A stretch of 64,000 bases of DNA, taken from contig RBZT01000312.1 of assembly GCA_003693705.1 (NCBI GenBank), forward strand, positions 208,095 through 272,094. The letters are read 5' to 3'. The position numbers and the translations under genes are program-made. Origin of the DNA: Polymyxa betae A26-41 (taxonomy: Eukaryota > Protista > Endomyxa: Phytomyxea). The notes beneath the pieces are model-generated. The model was not told the origin of the DNA. It did no database searches and saw only the letters and a program-made list of their open reading frames with translations. Shown in pieces: positions 14,263 through 61,712 of this stretch; within the stretch, counting starts at the first letter, position 1, and each line of letters opens with the position of its first letter.

Positions 14263-15213
14263 ATGACGGACAATACTAACCTCGATGCCATGGCCAGCGG
14301 TGGCTCGCCTCACATTTCGTCCGCCACTGCATTGGGAACGGACCACGGCGGCGGCTTTGAAATTCCCTTCGCAAAACGCCAGCGGGAGGACGCTTGCGAC
14401 GAATCTGCCGCTAAAAAAGGCAAGATGGATATGAACAGCGACTCCGAGTTGCTTAAAGAGGATGCTGCGGCCCCCCAGGCCGATTTTAACAAGGGCTCCT
14501 GTCATCAGTGCAAATCGCGCCGTGCTATTGGCGATCTGATTTTCTGTACTAATATTGTCGATAAGAAGAACAAGCACTGCCGGAAGAAGTATTGTGAAGG
14601 CTGCTTAAAAAAGTTCTATAAGGAAGATGTCAGTGATCCTTCGCAGAGGACCAATTGGTCCTGCCCTTCCTGTCGTAAGATGTGTTGCTGCGCTGCCTGT
14701 CGAAGGCGTCGTGATCCTAAGGAAGCGTCGTCCCAAGTGGCTGCTCATCAGATGCCTAACGATCAGCCAATGATGCAATCGTTAGGTGGCCAGATGATGC
14801 AACCGAACTTTCCTCCATTCGAATCCTCTGGAATCTTTTCGTCGTTAATACGGGAACCATCTGGTGGTACACCGATTTCTTACATGGCTAACAATATGAG
14901 CGCATTTCAGCCCCAATTGCCCCAAGAGCATCCTCTGTTTAGCAGCCAAGGAAGCTCGACTGGCGGCGTCGCTCAAAGCTCATCATTCGCCATGCTTTAT
15001 GCTGTGGCGCAGATGCCTCATGTCCGAGATCAGATCAAGCAGATTCTAGACCGATCTGATTTGACCGACGAGGAGAAGGTCGAATCTATTGCCGCCCTAT
15101 TACGTCGAGCCGTCGTTGGCGACGAGAACGCAGATGGCAATGGTCAACAGCAATCGGATGACCCCGCGACGTGTGATGAGACAACGAACGAGTTTGGCAA
15201 CGAAGAGGCTTGA
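14263..15213 (+). CDS. Intronless zf-4CXXC_R1 (CDCA7/JMJD1-type RING-like) zinc-finger protein
   Basis: SCHQCK..C..C.KKYCEGCLKKFY..WSCPSCRKMCCCAACRRRR; basic NLS-like stretches and a Q/M/S-rich tail. Confidence 0.85.
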   Translation: MTDNTNLDAMASGGSPHISSATALGTDHGGGFEIPFAKRQREDACDESAAKKGKMDMNSDSELLKEDAAAPQADFNKGSCHQCKSRRAIGDLIFCTNIVDKKNKHCRKKYCEGCLKKFYKEDVSDPSQRTNWSCPSCRKMCCCAACRRRRDPKEASSQVAAHQMPNDQPMMQSLGGQMMQPNFPPFESSGIFSSLIREPSGGTPISYMANNMSAFQPQLPQEHPLFSSQGSSTGGVAQSSSFAMLYAVAQMPHVRDQIKQILDRSDLTDEEKVESIAALLRRAVVGDENADGNGQQQSDDPATCDETTNEFGNEEA

Positions 15214-15596
15214 ATGGTATATTCATCGATTGGTCGTTTTGATCGATTGACAGAGAGCTAGTGCTTGCTTGCCATTCGTTATCCGTGTCTTTCATCTATC
15301 GATCATTAAAACTCTGCATTATAATTATGATATCAAATTTTGGCTTCCTCTTGATGTCATATTCTGCTTCTTTTTGGTCAATTTCAAATCAAACCTTGTC
15401 TGCTTAAGTGCTGCATTGTGAGTACTTTTGGCGTAGCTGGGAACTTAATATCTAAACGCGGTCATTCCGGTTTGAGTAATTTTGCGAGAACGAAATGAAT
15501 AAGAGTAGTTTTTTCTAAATGAATACAGAACTCAAGGGCTTGTAAAATAGGTTTATTTTGTTTCGAAACAATTGACGACCATGTATAGTTACAAGG

Positions 15597-16624
15597 TCAT
15601 TCGTCTGAATCTGGATTTCTATAGCTGACCATCGCATCCACTCGATGTATCTAGAGAACACTCAGAACACAATGGAAGAGTAAGAAAATTGTAAACCTTC
15701 GTTGTAAATGAGCGAAGCTTGACTTCAGCCGAATTCGCGATATACTTAGGGTCACTTTCTTCCCAAGCTTTCGGAACCTCTGTATCAAGGTCTGTATGAA
15801 TGAGTAGATCGAAAGTGCCTAAAAGATGTCAGGTTGCTTAGCATGCTTTCGTTTGCCAAATACATGGACTATCAAGCAGCGGCAAGAAAGTAACCGACGA
15901 TGTAATTTGTCTCATAATTGCTTGGATTTCTCTCATTATCTCCTATCATTGAAATCAGCATTTTGGCGTTTAGTCGTTTTGTGAAGCCCAACTTTTTCAG
16001 ATTTTGAGCTGGCGCTGTTATTCCTGCCGTTACAGTCTTCGTCGTTTCCTGGGACATCTGTAACTATATCAAATACCCATCTAATAAATAGTGCTGTCAG
16101 AAAAAACTTCAATGAGAAATTGATTCTTACCGCTCTAATGGCGACCCATCAAGTTGATTAGAAATTACAAGAACAAGGCATTGGACATGCCCAGTCGTAA
16201 GCCACTCTAATGCCATTGTAAATACTGCATGAAGCTGACAAAAAAGTTAGGCAGACCTGAAAGCTGGGTCAGAACTTGATCAAGGTATTCCACCAGCCCA
16301 GCATCAGTCGTAACAAGCTAAACATAAGCATCATAATCAAAGCAAACCAACAGTAGGCAGTCACTAACAAGCCTCAATCCATACTTTTCAGATGCTGAAA
16401 AGCTCTCCGGAGGATATATTCCACGTTGGTAAAGAATCGTGTTAATCGAAAACCCTGAACAATGAATTACTTTCTTCAGCCTCACATGGACCGAGAAACC
16501 GACCAAAGAACTCGGTGACAATCTGCGTCGATCCCTTCAATGTGATAGCATTCTTCGACGCTTGAGCCACACCAGACTGCAGACATCATTGAACCGCAGC
16601 TCCAGAATCAGCCATCATTACCAT
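15597..16624 (-). CDS. MAD2: Spindle checkpoint HORMA protein MAD2
   Basis: Spliced product [44 protein letters not shown]...EIQAIMRQITSSVTFLPLLD...IHRVDAMVSY. The first coding exon is the ATG alone (16622-16624). Confidence 0.93.
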
Positions 16625-53163: not shown

Positions 53164-56100
53164 CTAATCTAGCTTGAGTTTCTCTCTACGCTTTGTAGAT
53201 TGAATCAGCGAATCTGGAGAACGATATAGCCTGATCAAGGAGCGATATAGTGCTTCCTCCAGCTCGAATTCTTTTTGCTTCCTAGCAACGAAAATCCCTG
53301 CGACAAGCAATCAGCGGATTCTATTCAGCAAGTTGCACCTTATCGAACCTTCGCAGAGAAGCATCAGATCTGTTACATCATGGATATCCGTGTAGATGAT
53401 AGAGTACACTTGATTTTGAACCATCGATCGGAGGAATCGACCGACAGCCAACACGATCGTGACGTAAATTGTCGTCAAAGACATTGCAATTACAGCAGCT
53501 AATAGCCCAGACTGAATTCATGGTGAGTGACCAAGTCGGATGTTGATTGCTTCCAAATGTCCTTACCGTTATGGTATCGGATATTGTTAGCACATTCATT
53601 TTGCCAACACCATTGGGTCGTGTTAACTCCCACCACTCGACATTATTGTCCGATTTCAGCTGCAGCGAAAGAGGATAACTGTCCTCGCCCGAGGCGAAAG
53701 GAATTGGCTGCACCACCTTCGACAGTTTCAAACACAACGGAATGAATTTTCCGGTTATCAAAACTGGTGTGGACGACGTTCTATCCAGCATGTTCAGCAT
53801 GACCTTTTTATCATCATTGGACATTTCTTAATGATCGTCAGCTGGCTTCAAGGATAATGAGCACCGATCTTACCAGTATCTTTCTCAACCGATATTTCCG
53901 ACACACTGGAATCTTGATGGACGAATGAAAACCGCATACTGAATCGCAGAGCTGTGGTATCGTTCAGCGTCCTTCTGAACAATTCTAAACTAGGAGGCGA
54001 CAGTTGCCAAGGCGCATCCGAATATCCGTTCGCGATGATATTTTGCACCGTTCGAGTATCAGAAACGCTGCCCAGCATATTAACCTGATGAGATGACGCA
54101 CTCTCAATGGAGAGTGAGCTTGAATCCAACAAAGTGAACTAGTTCGAATTGTGTTAGTTTTCGCTCCCCTTACATAAGTGAATGTAAACTCACGCTAACT
54201 GCGGTAGTATTGCCATTCACAGATGGTGTTAAGAATAAGGTCATCGACCCTCGCTGAACATTGTTCAGCTGATTAGTGACAGGTGATGCTGTAGAGAATA
54301 GCAGCAATGGAAGGCAGATGACGACCATCAGACCAATAAACAGCAGCGTTCCGTTTGTGAATTTGGTTATTGTTGGAAACGGCTCTCCTCGCCGATGTTC
54401 TCGCTTGTAGATCAGGTCGCCCTTGATCATGTATAGATTGGAATAGATATCTTCCAGTTTGAATGTTTCTAAAATTCGACATTCAACATTGGATAATTTA
54501 GAATCGGTTGATGCTCACCAAAGAGATCCAGAGCAGTATCAGTACTGACCCAATCCAAAAGAACCTACAATGAAAAATTAATTGATGCACTTAACAAAAG
54601 TCGCCAGAGTGAGTACTTCTAGTTCAGCGACAAATGGAATCGCTCGATAGGCCTTGAATATGTACAGACGAGTCTTGGAAGCTTTACTGAAAATAATACG
54701 GTGGTGCAGCGTGTATGCAGGATAACCACATCTGATTTGAGTGCAGCTCATCCACCAATAGCAGCACTTCAGGATGAAGAACACGACCAAAGCGGGATTG
54801 GAAGAGAATCCGTATTGCCGATTCTAAAGAAAAGTCAACCGAGATTTAAACGGCTCATAAAAAGAAATACTTTAGGCCAGGAGAAGAACATCAGATACGT
54901 AAAGAAAAGAACCTGGATGTAATGCAGGCTCAGTTTCATCATCAGCGATCTGTACAGAAAGCATAGACGATCTGTTACAATAAAGATGATCTGAAGAAAC
55001 AGAACTCCAACCTATTACCCTGTCATCAATGACTCGAATAAAAAAACATTTCGAGATTACCATTGCCCCTTCAAAAGTTTGCGAGCGAATTTGATCTTGG
55101 TTGGAATTAGCTGAGGCAGTCAGAGAATTCCACCCAAATAAAATAAAAACTGCAGTAATCATCTCGACAATGAACGAAGGTATATAGTAGGACTTGCCAG
55201 GCTTGAGGGTGGTGTCGGTCATACCGGAAGACGTCAAGCCAAGCAGATTTCTCAAAAACATAGAGATGCGATCCGGTAGAATTTCCAGCACACGACCCGC
55301 TGTTTGAATGCGTTTATCTTCGAATTGACTGGCACGAGAGGTCAATGAATACTCGGATGACACCCGCCTGATTTCAGAGAAGTTCACTGATTTGGGACTG
55401 ATCAGTTCATTTCCATCGAGTTGTTTCGATTGCGACGGCGACGCGTTCACATTGTGGTTGTCATCATCGGCGACTGGAGAAGACGGCAATAAATCGTCGT
55501 TGAACTCGCCTTCGCACTCGTTATGCAAGGAATCGATTCCTTTTCGTTTGAGGCAGTGAAGATGAACAGCAGCAGCAAATAAGCAAAATAGATCTAGACA
55601 GACAAACCCCAAAAAGTTGAGTCCCGTGGTATTAATGAGGCCAGAAAACTGAGTCCATCCCAACGTTTGCGTTTCTTGCAAAACAGTTCGACCTGAGCCA
55701 TGCTCCTTGGATTGTGATGGATCAACAAAGAAACTAATGACGAACTTTAGGAAGATAACGAGTTCGATATACGTAATGCTGAGTGCCCAAAGAGATGGTG
55801 GCACTCTCGGCCTGACAAACAGCCCATACAAAAACAGTATCAAAGGAATGAAGAGCGCTGATAATGTTCCGTTGACGACAAGGTTTAAAATGAACATGGA
55901 GACACATAGTGTTTGAGTGTGACTGATGATAAATCGCATCAGAGCTGTCCAAAAACGCAGACCAGTTGCAGATTTTGGCGATTTGATGCAATTGATGTCT
56001 TCGTTCGCGTCCGCCTTGTTTGGGCAAGAGTTTGTAATAAGAAGAGCGCATTCATCTATCGATGAGAACATGAGGTGATCAGTCCGTTTCACCATTTCTT

Positions 56101-59100
56101 GCTTCAGAAATGATATCATACTTCTGAAATAGGAGATGGTGACATCTTCGACATGATGCCGTTTAAAACAGAGTTCCAACCCGGTTAATTCATCGTTGGC
56201 ATTCTCGACCGGGGTGATCGAAACTTCAGCGACGAAAACCAGAGGGGTTGGAGCAACTGCCGCTTGGCCATTAGGTGATGATTCGACTGGAGGCGTCCAA
56301 GTTTGCATTGAAGCCAGAAGGCTTTTGATTTGGATGGTCCCACCTGATGCAATCATGTCCTGAATAGCATTAGCCAAGCGTGACCGATCGTTTTCATTGA
56401 CAAAATGGCATGATAATGAGGATCCGATAATCGATTTCTCATTTTCTCTGCCATCAATCAAGTCGACAAAGGCAGAGGAGTAAGCCTCGATAATATCGTT
56501 CTCCAATGAAGTCCGAACAGCAGCCAGATCGGTCTTGATCAGCCCATCTGTCACCTCATTACTGCTATCGAACCTTTTAACATTTGCTGAAGGCGTTTGC
56601 GATCCCAATCCCAAAGTGGCATCAAACACGCTACCGATAGTTACTGGCGACATAAAAAACACAATGCCAACAAGATTTCCATCCGCATCTGTTAACGGCG
56701 TCAACCATGCATCGACGTCGATTTGAAGTCGACTCTCCCTGCGCAGAGTGAATATAAAGATAAACGCTACACTTTGCACTGACTTTTTGATAAAGGCCAA
56801 CCGTTGAGAGTCCATATTCTGCACCTCCCGAAACGATTTCGAGCGAAGGCATTTCCTGATTACCTGTTTGATGTTCGATGAAATCTTTCTTGGGAAAATT
56901 TCCCAAGCGTATAAGCCGATCACATCTTTCGCATTCCACTGAGTCAATAGCGACACTTCCGGATTCCATTCAATAATCCTTTTATCCTTATCAATGGTGA
57001 AGTGGACGGTTCGTTCAGGAGGAACAGAAGGCCACACTTCAGTGTCTTCCAACTTCTCCAGGCCCAATCGTCGCGTATCAGTAAGCAAACAACGTAGCTG
57101 ATGCCTCAACTCTTCTTGAACGCGCCTCATTGAGTGAAATTCGGCGATACGAGTATTATTCCATAAAACACTAGCAAGATTTAATCGAATCTCGCCAACG
57201 TCTCTCCATCTCACGTATTCGGCTTCAATCCGTTCACAATTTGAACGCTGGTCTAATCTTCTTTTGATGTCCAAAATCAGAAATCCGATTAGAAAAGATA
57301 GAAACCCAGAGGAAGAAAGGGCAGCTTGAGCACTATCGATATGGCGTAGGCCCAAGTCGTTATCAACTGAGTCTGAAAGCAGAGCAGTGCGATCTCCAGG
57401 CCACGGGCACTGATATCCCAACAAAAGCAGGAAGATGACGTAATTGCAGATTCGGAGCACACTCCAGCATTTGCCATTGAAAGGCCCCGTGCTGTAAACA
57501 ATAATCGCAATCATCAAAAGGATCAGATGCGTAACGTCGGCATATAAAGAAGATGCTATGAACATAGCGCCGATGAGAAAATAAGGACAGAATGGAAGAA
57601 TTCGGGACCCCAAAGTAGAAGGCCTTTTAGGACCAGGAAGATCGACGAGCACCGATTGTTGCTCATTTACTAACTCGGAAGCTGAAACGACGACAGGATG
57701 CATAGCCGCAATGCAAGAATTGGCAAAATTGCACATAGAGAGCAGCCAGAGAGCCACATAAGTAAAAGCAATATTTGGAACATAGTCGATAGTTAAGCCA
57801 AGCCAATTTTTTTGAGCTTTGCTCAAGTCCGGAATGGGAATTGTATAGGGAAGAGTGGGCGGCGGCCCAAGAGCAGCAAGGCATTCCAAAATTGTAATAA
57901 ACAAGAATAACAGCACCGTCACTCGCCAGAATCGCTTTTGCAATCGTTTCCCAAAATTGTAGAACGAGCCCCACACAACAAAGATAAAAAGTGACGCAGC
58001 AGTCCTTCTGGCAGCAATCGCACAAAATATTGCAATTGAAGCTAGCTCGATATCGAATCTGAACGGGAAACTGCCGTCAAAAAGCGAGTTTAACTGCAGG
58101 AGCACATATCTTGCGACAGTGGATATCGTATGTGATAAGATCGATCGAGTGCGACCAAAGCGGCTCGCTGTGGCATCAGGCTTCATTGATTCGGATGAAT
58201 CAAGAGAAACACAGCTGTCAGAGGGAGACCTTTCCTCAAGACCAGCCGCATTCTTTACCGACACAATGGGACCTTGATTAAATTGTTGAGCGAGGAACCC
58301 TTCGCGTTCCATTTGCTCCGCAAGCGAACCGACCATTACAAAGGCGCGCTGAATGTAAATAAACAGAAGAATTAATAGTTCACCCCGAAGTGCATCCGTC
58401 CCTAAGAGTTGATCCTGAATTACGTTGAATCCTATATAATCAGCTCTTGCTCCACTCCATCTGGCGCGAACCGGCCGGATTTGGAACAAATATCTCGCCA
58501 GCAAAAATACTGACGTCAAGATCAGCTCGGGAAGCCAGACAAAACAGAATCCCTCTGTTCTAAGCATGCAGATACAGGACGCCAGGACATAGATGAAAGA
58601 AATTACAGAAGGGTGCAAACAGAAAGCGACAATCGGAAGCAAAGCAACAATTTTTGATATCATACTTGCGCAGAAGGCCAGGCGTCGCGAACCAATGCGT
58701 GTGAGAACACTGGACCATTTGAATTCAGAAGCTCTAGAAGGCTGAGCGCCGAAGTATTGGATTCGGAAGAACGATACTGTAACAAAGAAAACTGAAATTG
58801 CCGGAAGTAACTGGAAGAATAACGAATCAACAGCGGTATCGATGATTGGCATCCCGATAATATTAATATCAATGCGAAATTCCGGTTGTGGCGGATAATA
58901 AAGCAGCTCGATAATAGTTTCAACAAGAGATGATACAATCTTATATTGCACAGCGTATTTCAAGAATACCACACTGGCAGTATACGCAACAGCTAGGGCC
59001 CAGAAAATGTAATGCCTTGAGCGTCCACTGACAATGCTGATGCTTGACACCATGAATGCGGTAAGACATAACGTCAAATAACCGAAATCGAAGATTGTAG

Positions 59101-61712
59101 GTTCTTCCGAGAAGGAAATCAAGAAAAACGCAAAGCACGCGATCAAAGAGCCAAAGTTATGAAACGCTTCGTTGAAAATAGAGGACAGACTCAAAACGAC
59201 TCGAATGCCAGTAGTCTTCCAGGCAGCACTCATCTCCCCCCAGTTGGATCGCTGTCGTTGATCAATAAAATGAAGTTGGAACAGACAAAGCGCTGTTGCC
59301 ACCAATGGTGGAATGAACATGGCAAAGAACGGATTGAGAGCGACAAGCCCAATGGATTGGAAGATATAGCCCATGTAACCTTCCGGTTGTGGATTGATAA
59401 CGCTTACCGTATACTGGCAGAGCAACGCTGAAGCCGAAAATATCGTCAAGGGCAACCATTTTTCTCTTTTTGCTGATAGCTTCGGCATCGACACATAGAG
59501 CAGCGAAATAAGAACGTAGCCAATGTGAAGCAAATCGATCCGCGAAAATCCGACGAAAAAGACGCAGAGCAAAGCGATTTTGGCACCATACACTATGAGA
59601 GCGACTTTGACGATTCTCTCGAACTCCGACCAGGCTTCCAAAACAAATTCTTTGACAGCATAGAAGTCCAGTTTGTTGGATGTATCAGCCCGTAGTCTGG
59701 CCTGTTGTTCTTCCCAGCGTTCTGATGTTTGTGCGCCATAGCGTAGCAGCTGTCTCGTAATGCGACTTTGATTTGAGAGTTCAAGGGCCGACCTTCCATC
59801 AGCATCCAAAACGTCAATAAGAGCAAGCCCTCCACGATGTAAAACGACCTCAACAGAACCGAGATGACCATGAAGAACAGCATTATGTAAAGCCGTTCGA
59901 CCCCTGCTGTCAACAGCTTTAACAAATAAATCTTGATCACGACGAAGAGCCATGTCGAGAAAGTATTCATCACCTTCTATCGACGCATTTATAATGTTTG
60001 GGGTTGTCAGCGGGGCTCTGGCTGCTGTCCTTTTATTTGCACTTGAGCGACAGTAAAGCCATAAGATTAAAGCGGGCGATAAAAACAAGGCCATCGACAA
60101 AGCCGAAGTGCTTGATTCATCATTGTATAAGCCAAATAATTTCAGAGTGTCATCACTGAGAGTAAACACCCACGGCAGAGAAAATACAACAAATGCACAA
60201 ACAGCAACAGACACCGAGAACGGCAGAAGAGTATATAGTGCCACCTCTGAAAACTGACTAGTTCCCATCAGTAATCCGGCTAGCACGAACGCCATGAGGA
60301 CGACATTGAAGAGTTGCTGATGGACAATGAAGACAACAGTAAGAGCGAAGATACAGATTGAAATTTCGAATGTTCGAAGCCCACGTCGGAATAACTTTGC
60401 GACATTTACTGAGAACGATCGAGCATCTTTGCTGTCTCTAGATGAACGCGAATCGTTCTCGAGTTTCTCCGGAGCTGATGAAGCTCGAACTATCGGGGGG
60501 CTTAATGGAACGAGATGCTCAGGAGATGCCGACGGATTTTTGGCACCCTTAGGCTGTTCAGCAGTCGACGGAAATGGCACCGCACGGATCTCGATCTCAT
60601 CTGAATCCGTTTTCGCATCTTCTTCATGAGTCGTTTCAAAATGAAGAGCTGACGGTGACTTAATATCACTTGAATGTGGACGTCGATGCAGGATTTTTTT
60701 TGTATTCATTCTGGAAGGCAGTTGAACAGATGAAGAGATTCGCAGGGCAGCTGATCTAATCTGAGGTAACTTTGGGAATGGAATAGGATCGGTTTTAGCA
60801 CGTTCCAATGGATGTAGTGGAATTTGATTGCTGTCGGACTGGCTGGGTACATTAGCATTAGAGCTGCCGATAAAGAACTGGAACCGGACCAGAGGGCTGA
60901 ACAAAAGGAACAGCGCTAGTTCAATACTGATTGCAGTAAACAGATACCAATCAGCAATACTCCAGGTGACGCCATGATTAGGCATGACGCCTAAGAATAA
61001 ACGAGTCTCCCTTGATAGTGATCTGGAAATTTCTGTAATCCTTAAAATGGATATTGTAACCGAATGAAGGGCTGCATGGATAAGAAGAAATATTCTCCAA
61101 TAACGGATGTCTTCGCATTTCAAACGATGAAGGCCACTTTCAAACAAGGCATCAAGCTGTTCTGGCTGCTGAAATGCTCGAAGAAGGAAGATGCTTGCTA
61201 GTAAGATGACATAAGGAATCCGGAAAATATTCGGAGACAGAACGCAGGCGACAAACTCGCCAGAGAAAAAGGCATAGACCTACGACCAATTAAAAAGAAA
61301 GAACCAAATCTTCGTTGATTGAACTTTCCTTTAATCGTCCAATTTCGTTCATTGGGTCAACAGAGGGCCTACCGTATGCTGATTTCCCATATGCATCCAC
61401 TGTAACTTCGCACGCTGAAAGCACAAGGATGACTAGCGTGATAATCAAGAATATAACGCTCATCCAATCCCATTGACGAGTGTAGCCAAAGAGGTGCCAG
61501 TAAAAATCGGCATCAAAGTTCGCTGGCATGATCGCAAAGACGATCAAGCCGGCCAACCACAGCGCTGTCAGAACGGTGGTCGCTATCGGCCACGCCCAAT
61601 GCGGACGGGATATGCATCTGGCGAGCGTGAATACCAAGTACAGCGTACATGTCAGACTGTCATCGATAATGGCGGCTACCAGCGAGCATATAACAATGGC
61701 AACTGAGAGCAT
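53164..61712 (-). CDS. PIEZO: Piezo-family mechanosensitive channel with inserted ankyrin repeats and tandem PAS domains
   Basis: Pore-module motifs SCTQIRCGYP, YRAIPFVAEL, DWVSTDTAL, KLEDIY, LPLLLFS, ELEEALYRSLIRLYRSP; many 4-TM repeats; stop at 53164-53166. Confidence 0.92.

Follow-up and report, generated by a model that had tools for sequence, protein, structure and literature searches.

The prevailing view is that membrane tension gates Piezo channels through a lever formed by the blade and the beam. The beam is a long cytoplasmic helix that starts right after TM28, where THU7 ends, and reaches the pore axis. In animals, conduction and inactivation are tuned by a cytoplasmic region consisting of plug, latch, and clasp, which in Piezo1 are located under the pore and under THU8. 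In KCNH channels (EAG/hERG), which belong to an unrelated family, tuning is the task of the eag/PAS domain, an N-terminal domain that docks on the CNBHD. Animal Piezo1 and Piezo2 as well as C. elegans PEZO-1 (e.g., 8yez, 9uoy, 6bpz) have in common a blade of four-helix THUs, the THU9-anchor, the cap, the inner helix/CTD, and PF(X2)E(X6)W, a conserved Piezo motif (Prole and Taylor, 2013; PMC3681921). According to the domain map of human PIEZO1 (PMC12308237), the linker between THU7 and THU8 contains the beam and, after it, the central and lateral plugs, the latch, a disordered segment, and finally the clasp.

The DNA analyzed here, referred to as the window, is a stretch of 64,000 nucleotides from Polymyxa betae A26-41 (contig RBZT01000312.1, positions 208,095 to 272,094). 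It contains a Piezo gene whose product resembles the animal channels in all of these shared elements and in having a long cytoplasmic THU7-THU8 linker that opens with a long helix. In place of the animal post-beam elements, the Polymyxa protein features a PAS domain (PAS-1) and a second, probable one (PAS-2), and it carries ankyrin repeats in an earlier loop. The best explanation as a whole, to which we assign a probability of roughly 0.55, is a single expressed Piezo with a PAS-bearing THU7-THU8 linker in which the PAS pair would serve as a modulator. The features of the locus are as follows, in window coordinates and in the order of the protein:

53164..61712, minus strand: whole Piezo gene, limits approximate (ORF lists, Pfam on pieces, introns from spliced contigs)
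61290..61712, minus strand: probable N-terminal exon, followed by large exons and then small 3' exons
59720..59992, minus strand: ankyrin repeats in an earlier inter-THU loop, aa ~386-476 (Pfam, PDB, alignment to Plasmodiophora brassicae)
57266..57601, minus strand: four hydrophobic helices assigned to THU7 (TM25-28 equivalent), aa 1183-1294, directly upstream of the pre-THU8 linker (hydropathy)
57014..57262, minus strand: long charged helix in beam position (aa 1296-~1365) and linker to PAS-1 (hydropathy, AF2, conservation)
56636..57013 (approximate), minus strand: PAS-1, a canonical PAS domain split by a 45-nt intron (Pfam, AF2, Foldseek, custom HMM)
56739..56783, minus strand: in-frame GT..AG intron of 45 nt that separates strand G of PAS-1 from strand H (spliced contigs)
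56516..56635, minus strand: linker of about 40 aa between PAS-1 and PAS-2 (low AF2 pLDDT; 45% identity to P. brassicae)
56153..56515, minus strand: PAS-2, a probable diverged PAS-like domain, core about 56165-56497, with a ~20-aa insertion before the H strand (custom HMM, hhalign, ESM)
56063..56152, minus strand: conserved DIT-like motif V-E-D-V-T-I-S and a helix that runs from PAS-2 in the direction of THU8 (alignments)
55535..55927, minus strand: THU8, four TM helices (Pfam THU_Piezo1, PDB alignment, hydropathy)
54173..55011, minus strand: THU9 and anchor exons, namely 54871-55011, 54617-54823, 54519-54564, and one at or below 54468 (Pfam, spliced contigs, translations)
53167..54132, minus strand: exons of the cap (CED), inner helix, and C-terminal domain (Pfam Piezo_cap, own-genome search)

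By sequence, the minus-strand gene at ~53164-61712 is a complete Piezo, with THU repeats, THU9-anchor, cap, inner helix/CTD, and the PF(X2)E(X6)W motif, and its product is predicted to form a trimeric cation channel activated by mechanical force. It is the single Piezo locus, the only match to Piezo_cap in a profile search of the organism's own 27.1-Mb genome. The ORF of 2091 codons at 54872..61147 on the minus strand is present in the DNA, and a hydropathy scan of its translation groups the helices in fours. The expectation that ordinary Piezo membrane units resume after the PAS pair is borne out by THU8, which is recognized by Pfam THU_Piezo1 at aa 1741-1871 (E 1.5e-18, 67.5 bits, cut-off 27.2). 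Human PIEZO1 1671-1754 and C. elegans PEZO-1 align to the THU8 region, and PDB Piezo1 chains do so over aa 1694-1813. Further downstream, Pfam on the exons finds Piezo_THU9_anchor (PF24874; E 1.1e-16 and 4.5e-7, 61.3 and 29.9 bits) and, in separate exons, Piezo_cap (PF12166; E 4.7e-6, 2.7e-11, and 5.1e-12; 26.9, 44.1, and 46.5 bits). Within the THU9 and anchor exons, the PF(X2)E(X6)W motif is intact across an RNA-confirmed splice, with P-F-V-A-E-L-E closing one exon and V-L-L-D-W opening the next. Outside THU8, THU9-anchor, and cap, PDB searches detected no sequence similarity to animal Piezo. The ankyrin segment stays below threshold in the Pfam Ank families (E 0.0014-0.024), has matches among the designed ankyrin proteins of the PDB, with E-values as low as 3.8e-12, and is 55% identical between Polymyxa and P. 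brassicae.

The original prediction described one uninterrupted Piezo ORF, which is true of the DNA and not of the mRNA, from which the 45-nt intron at 56739-56783 is removed. Read-through of this intron would encode 15 extra residues. Contigs of X1 and X5, runs that come from two studies, show its splice joint, and further introns are removed at 55012-55060, 54824-54870, 54565-54616, and 54469-54518, so that the last ~62 codons of the ORF (below 55061) are intron read-through. The evidence for splicing consists of Logan contigs of these two runs, for which the record gives no library type; the removal of five GT..AG introns, 45-52 nt in length, clearly marks the contigs as derived from cDNA. 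A spliced contig of 3828 nt covers 54615-57447 and a second covers 56250-58094, and the PAS region is retained. Together, the contigs of the two independent studies join the THU9 exons, THU8, PAS-2, PAS-1, and the upstream membrane region without mismatches, and the segment is not spliced out: both PAS domains remain joined to the flanking Piezo membrane units. Two raw RNA-seq runs under the organism's label (X16, X17) placed zero reads on the stretch and hence provide no test. It is almost certain that the PAS-bearing Piezo layout is real and expressed.

After the last four helices of THU7, the protein continues with a long helix, PAS-1, a linker, and PAS-2 before it reaches THU8. No hydrophobic segment was found at 57014..57262 in the hydropathy scan, and AF2 models a helix at aa 1341-1360 with pLDDT 73-83. 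The original identification of this helix as the Piezo beam holds for its placement and for the part modelled as helical, whereas similarity in sequence to the animal beam is absent, and a THU7-plus-beam profile matched no Piezo chain in the PDB. The helix is therefore assigned to the beam by position only, directly after the fourth helix of THU7. Nowhere in the protein is conservation higher than in the C-terminal 41 residues of the helix region (57014-57136), which are also conserved in a metagenome contig (L007, see below), and the helix-PAS junction is 80.5% identical to that of P. brassicae as opposed to 38% overall. At the other end of the PAS pair, the V-E-D-V-T-I-S motif, which we take from general knowledge of PAS domains to be a DIT-type PAS output junction, is unchanged in both species within a segment (56063..56152) that is 50% identical. 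The helix after PAS-2 is predicted by AF2 with low confidence.

PAS-1, originally placed at ~56654-57007, is a true PAS domain, and this is certain. In the whole ORF it scores above the Pfam gathering thresholds of PAS_9 (31.1 bits, threshold 27), PAS (27.9, 22.6), and PAS_4 (25.9, 23.1), and it reaches 61.9 bits with a custom PAS HMM built from 139 PAS domains. It was folded as genomic read-through, with the 15 intron-coded residues included (pLDDT 37), and the AF2 model has pLDDT 86-95 (about 90) and shows two strands, helices, and three strands, in keeping with the five-stranded antiparallel sheet and flanking helices of the PAS fold. In Foldseek, the model matches PAS/LOV structures at E 2e-6 with probability 1.0 and TM up to 0.77. 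In the PDB, 420 matches reach E <= 0.001, and the best 50 listed belong to PAS, LOV, or eag domains; superposition on the eag domain of EAG1 (4llo_D) yields a TM of 0.70. Among the Foldseek matches listed, the fold is nearest to LOV, haem-PAS, and FAD-PAS, with 12-17% identity to LOV. The nearest sequence relatives of PAS-1 outside the plasmodiophorid Piezo are multi-PAS sensor histidine kinases (25-35% identity over the PAS N-half), whose output is a kinase/receiver module and not a channel. The best generic match comes from Paulinella micropora, a rhizarian, and is a histidine kinase with 32 PAS repeats (EP00808 P004539); Piezo domains were absent from all nine PAS-1 matches scanned. Inspection of the sequence found no LOV motif with adduct cysteine in the corresponding helix of PAS-1, and in the alignment no histidine of the F-helix region is conserved between Polymyxa and P. 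brassicae. The LOV photoreceptor and haem-PAS readings were dropped on these motif grounds. The LOV cysteine and the haem histidine define sensor subclasses and not the PAS fold itself.

The second PAS domain, which had been placed at ~56160-56530, is probably a true PAS fold, with profile comparisons and ESM features in its favor and Pfam thresholds and AF2 confidence falling short. PAS-2 is below every curated Pfam threshold in the window (PAS_9, 13.6 bits, E 0.086, cut-off 27), and its P. brassicae counterpart is sub-threshold as well (PAS, 14.1 bits, E 0.047, cut-off 22.6). The custom HMM scores PAS-2 at 7.6 and 9.1 bits in the two species, and none of 1000 shuffles scored as high. With hhalign, the 139-domain profile aligns to PAS-2 at a probability of 75% (E 2.4e-5, 90 columns, template 11-100 of 127), while a small 16-row profile centred on PAS-1 gives 0.2%. 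A search of the PDB with a PAS-2 profile returned only a chance thioredoxin match (E 0.3). The named ESM-feature neighbors of PAS-2 are all PAS in both orthologues, with scores of 0.95-0.96. AF2 gives pLDDT 24-63 in the model of the pair and a mean of 40 for PAS-2 alone (two-row alignment), and the order of elements, although unreliable at these values, is compatible with PAS.

The same arrangement is found in Plasmodiophora brassicae, the clubroot parasite, where ankyrin repeats, THU7, helix, PAS-1, PAS-2, THU8, and pore module follow one another in identical order. This orthologue consists of PBRA_006922 and the downstream model on CDSF01000087.1 and is 38% identical overall. Its PAS-1 is also interrupted by an intron, of 67 nt, at the same codon. 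Identity between the two proteins is 47-62% in PAS-1 and 37% in PAS-2, as opposed to about 22% in unstructured loops. A third lineage surfaced in an exhaustive search as a 62-aa match (P0007); its metagenome contig, L007, retains THU7 helices, beam start, junction, and the N-half of PAS-1 in order (E 0.003, 1e-7, and 6e-24). The Piezo-PAS layout is thus shown to be older than the split between Polymyxa and Plasmodiophora. Conserved peptides used as queries in two scans of metagenomes recovered no relative, and neither the THU8-THU9 region nor the exon that follows the PAS-1 intron had any match in word-indexed searches of proteins. In agreement with the original expectation that the architecture is neither widespread nor described, it occurred in the libraries searched only in P. 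brassicae and the one metagenome contig beyond Polymyxa, and no paper on a PAS-bearing Piezo was found, so that PAS-in-Piezo is apparently new to the literature.

As for function, the PAS pair may substitute for the plug, latch, and clasp found in animal Piezo1 and would most likely modulate gating or inactivation as an integral cytosolic part of the channel. Such modulation could take place through domain contacts with the end of the beam, the C-terminal domain, or the base of THU8, which is conjecture. This role would resemble that of the KCNH eag/PAS domain and would not necessarily need a small-molecule ligand. Like KCNH channels, the Polymyxa protein features a PAS fold within the cytoplasmic part of an ion channel, and they can serve as a working analogy for how contacts between domains might modulate gating. 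The resemblance is a functional analogy only, and a Pfam scan of the Piezo ORF found neither K+ channel nor CNBHD families. We give a role as gating modulator about even odds.

An alternative possibility, as first proposed, is a hybrid chemo-/mechano-sensor, in which a ligand or cofactor of one or both PAS domains (haem, flavin, a metabolite, a gas, or redox state) would allosterically gate or sensitize the pore. The sequence of PAS-1 is nearest to the PAS domains of sensor kinases, its listed fold neighbors are of the LOV, haem-PAS, and FAD-PAS types, and it is located at the plug/latch position of animal Piezo1 (PMC12308237). These points are countered by the lack of the LOV adduct cysteine and of a conserved F-helix histidine in PAS-1, and the LOV matches, at their low identity, reflect the common PAS fold. 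Many PAS domains, KCNH eag included, also lack a known ligand, which counts against a sensor. It is therefore doubtful that the PAS pair truly senses a ligand, redox state, or a gas and that membrane force and a chemical signal from the cytosol act together to gate the Piezo; a channel of this kind would be the first Piezo to have a sensor domain of its own.

It is likewise improbable that the PAS pair and the ankyrin repeats form a passive scaffold, acting as structural clasps or as sites where cytoskeletal, trafficking, or signalling partners dock, that leaves gating unchanged. Both PAS and ankyrin domains commonly mediate protein interactions, and the presence of two different soluble modules, both conserved, in two cytoplasmic loops of one protein would fit such a role. 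Conservation is, however, highest (80%) at the junction of helix and PAS-1, and the DIT-like motif after PAS-2 is invariant, which suggests mechanical or allosteric coupling as opposed to a loosely tethered docking site. An artefact (misassembly, a retained intron, or in-silico fusion of a neighboring gene), to which the difference between raw ORF and protein (one in-frame intron, a read-through tail) might point, is highly improbable and was rejected on the mismatch-free spliced contigs that bridge the region in two independent studies and on the alignment to P. brassicae, where the order recurs with the intron at the same codon; the order is also that of the metagenome contig.

Folded signalling domains (PAS-1 and probably PAS-2) appear to have replaced the plug/latch/clasp region, a substitution conserved in the sole Piezo of an entire parasite order. 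This would constitute a natural test of whether a conformational change in a cytosolic domain at the end of the beam can control the Piezo pore, and it offers a possible template for engineering Piezos controlled by ligands or light. For plasmodiophorid biology, the sole mechanosensitive Piezo becomes a possible integrator of signals in the zoospore or the intracellular stages; a role of the channel in zoospores or at the host surface is speculation. The comparison also corrects an annotation, as the P. brassicae orthologue was hidden as two anonymous models. The gene model is split at the PAS-1 intron into hypothetical proteins of 1603 and 566 aa, and the C-half of PAS-1, PAS-2, and THU8 lie outside any gene model, which makes the architecture invisible in the annotation.

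The large Piezo ORF of the window is an open frame of 2091 codons, by which amino acid positions are counted here, and the minus strand also bears the following features.

54872..61147, minus strand: large Piezo ORF
61290-61712, minus strand: probable N-terminal exon (ORF of 140 aa, three hydrophobic helices), immediately upstream of the large exon
59720-59992 (aa ~386-476), minus strand: ankyrin repeats
56739-56783, minus strand: in-frame intron of 45 nt, placed between strands G and H of PAS-1
55012-55060, minus strand: intron, 49 nt
54824-54870, minus strand: intron, 47 nt
54565-54616, minus strand: intron, 52 nt
54469-54518, minus strand: intron, 50 nt

Within the ORF, aa 1741-1871 match the Pfam transmembrane helical unit THU_Piezo1 (E 1.5e-18), confirming that Piezo membrane units continue after the PAS pair, and there is a weak match to Piezo_TM1-24. 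Piezo_THU9_anchor and Piezo_cap, with the inner helix and CTD, are carried by small exons downstream. The PF(X2)E(X6)W motif, for which absolute conservation in Piezos has been reported (PMC3681921), is intact and spans an RNA-confirmed splice. The short upstream ORF, the counterpart of residues 1 to ~165 in P. brassicae, is the probable N-terminal exon. With the exons for THU9 and cap included, the gene spans ~53164-61712 and makes up a complete Piezo. Since all three Piezo_cap matches in the entire assembly lie within this gene, it is the sole Piezo of the assembly, and its PAS-bearing exon is present in one copy. The window has a GC content of ~45%.

The PAS domains lie in the cytoplasmic linker between THU7 and THU8. 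By hydropathy, aa 1183-1294 hold four helices and aa 1740-1867 four more, with no hydrophobic segment in between; THU9 follows, its first helix being at aa 1988. The helices at aa 1740-1867 are the Pfam THU and align with human PIEZO1 residues 1671-1754 and with C. elegans PEZO-1. In human PIEZO1, THU7 (residues 1117-1304) is followed by the beam (1305-1367), plugs and latch (1368-1425), clasp (1515-1570) and THU8 (1657-1802) (PMC12308237), and aa 1296-1735 therefore correspond to the THU7-THU8 linker. Whereas plugs, latch and clasp fill this linker in animal Piezos, PAS-1 and a probable PAS-2 are found there in the window. The charged helix that opens the linker had been equated with the Piezo beam; this assignment holds by position only, because a profile of THU7 plus the helix matched no Piezo chain in the PDB.

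PAS-1 is well-supported. At aa 1383-1502, three families pass their Pfam gathering scores, namely PAS_9 (31.1 bits, cut-off 27), PAS (27.9 bits, cut-off 22.6) and PAS_4 (25.9 bits, cut-off 23.1). An AF2 model of the pair (aa 1340-1700, genomic read-through with intron-coded residues included; alignment of the P. brassicae pieces with 16 PAS segments taken from library matches) gives PAS-1 a pLDDT of 86-95. Foldseek finds 420 PDB matches to it at E <= 0.001, and the best 50 of these include LOV, haem-PAS and FAD-PAS domains and the EAG1 eag domain; probabilities are 1.0 and TM scores reach 0.77.

The second domain of the original prediction is more diverged, and the evidence is divided. PAS-2 stays below Pfam thresholds in the window (PAS_9, E 0.086) and, at the equivalent position, in P. 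brassicae (PAS, E 0.047); hhalign with a small PAS-1 profile gave no match, a profile search of the PDB found nothing, and its pLDDT is low (24-63 when modelled with PAS-1, 40 when modelled by itself). However, a custom HMM of 139 PAS domains, drawn from unrelated multi-PAS kinases found in the protein-library search, scores PAS-2 at 7.6 bits in the window and 9.1 bits in P. brassicae, values reached by 0/1000 shuffled sequences in each case. The two-species PAS-2 alignment matches the 139-row PAS alignment in hhalign (probability 75%, E 2.4e-5) over 90 columns that span template positions 11-100 of 127; ~20 residues are inserted ahead of the H strand. ESM-Atlas feature neighbours with an assigned family are all PAS for both orthologues (scores 0.95-0.96), which is a lead only. 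From these comparisons, PAS-2 quite probably adopts a PAS fold. Directly C-terminal to it, an invariant V-E-D-V-T-I-S motif in the two species is followed by a helix. DIT junctions connect PAS cores with output helices, and this motif with its helix resembles one.

Public data were compared with positions 54400-60300 of the window using contigs assembled from runs X1, of a 2017 study, and X5, of a 2022 study under another organism label. These contigs omit five segments, each of which runs from GT to AG on the minus strand, and are thus cDNA-derived. Two raw RNA runs yielded no reads over this region and do not bear on the splicing. A 3828-nt X5 contig spans 54615 to 57447, from THU9 exons through THU8, PAS-2 and PAS-1 to the helix, and X1 contigs tile 55059-60300 with no additional joint; the PAS pair is therefore kept in the mRNA and joined on both sides to Piezo membrane units. 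The frame described as uninterrupted is so in DNA, but the mRNA lacks the 45-nt intron inside PAS-1 (GTCAGT...GCGCAG). It lies at the same codon as a frame break in P. brassicae PAS-1 bounded by GTAAGC...CAG, and its 15 encoded residues have a pLDDT of 37 in the read-through model. The last ~62 codons of the ORF are non-coding, because the RNA contigs splice 55061 to 55011 (positions 54872-55060 are affected); the tail below 55061 arises by reading through the 49-nt intron and on, out of frame, into the exon that follows.

Plasmodiophorids share this layout. In libraries of 5.8 billion and 1.84 billion proteins, the sole clear relative is P. brassicae PBRA_006922 (38% identity over 1485 residues, which take in the ankyrin repeats and where PAS-1 begins). 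Its region on contig CDSF01000087.1, 10001-18498, is annotated as two hypothetical proteins, a first one of 1603 aa and a second of 566 aa. At the PAS-1 intron (14779-14845, 67 nt) the first model breaks off, the C-terminal half of PAS-1, PAS-2 and THU8 (~14847-16370) fall outside any gene model, and the second model bears THU9_anchor and Piezo_cap.

Identity to P. brassicae by segment
Helix C-terminal half and junction to PAS-1: 80%
PAS-1: 47-62%
Post-PAS-2 helix: 50%
THU8: 44%
PAS-2: 37%
Unstructured loops: about 22%

Conservation peaks at aa 1338-1378 (positions 57014-57136), with 80% identity to P. brassicae against 38% overall; this stretch takes in the linker to PAS-1 and the C-terminal half of the helix in the beam position. 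Its L-G-L-E-K core is also invariant in a 1211-bp JGI contig (metagenome 3300039110, Ga0400487_17494) reached through a 62-aa metagenome protein, P0007. Three matches follow one another along this contig: to helices of THU7 (E 0.003), to the final THU7 helix and the beginning of the charged helix (E 1e-7), and to the junction and N-terminal half of PAS-1 (49% identity, E 6e-24). They indicate a third lineage, a putative uncultured relative with the same architecture. The coding parts of the contig occupy three frames, and short introns are presumed. Two metagenome scans gave no additional relatives. The architecture is not widespread in the libraries searched, and no description of a Piezo with PAS domains was found in the full-text literature searched (InterPro-style architecture tables lay outside this scope).

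This single-copy Piezo is expressed, and we infer that its PAS pair serves as a cytosolic modulator, which would influence gating by contacting the channel close to the beam end and THU8, with the KCNH eag domain as an analogue. The invariant junctions flanking the pair fit such coupling. The hybrid chemo-/mechano-sensor proposed originally, with the pair as ligand sensor, is unlikely: PAS-1 has no LOV cysteine motif, and its alignment between the two species holds no conserved F-helix histidine. That the pair is a passive scaffold is likewise improbable. An artefact is effectively excluded by the spliced contigs of two studies.

A second soluble module is present in an earlier cytoplasmic loop, where the ankyrin segment (55% identity to P. 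brassicae) is sub-threshold in Pfam (aa 388-473) and matches designed ankyrin proteins in the PDB (E down to 3.8e-12); the protein thus holds two different inserts. The remaining library matches cover PAS-1 only. Nine were scanned with Pfam: eight are histidine kinases and one is a SpoIIE phosphatase, all of them signalling proteins with multiple PAS domains, and none carries a Piezo domain. The best, P0002 from the rhizarian Paulinella micropora (EukProt EP00808 P004539; 4799 aa), combines 32 PAS repeats with histidine kinase and receiver domains, which hints at a possible origin of the Piezo PAS in a multi-PAS kinase of Rhizaria.
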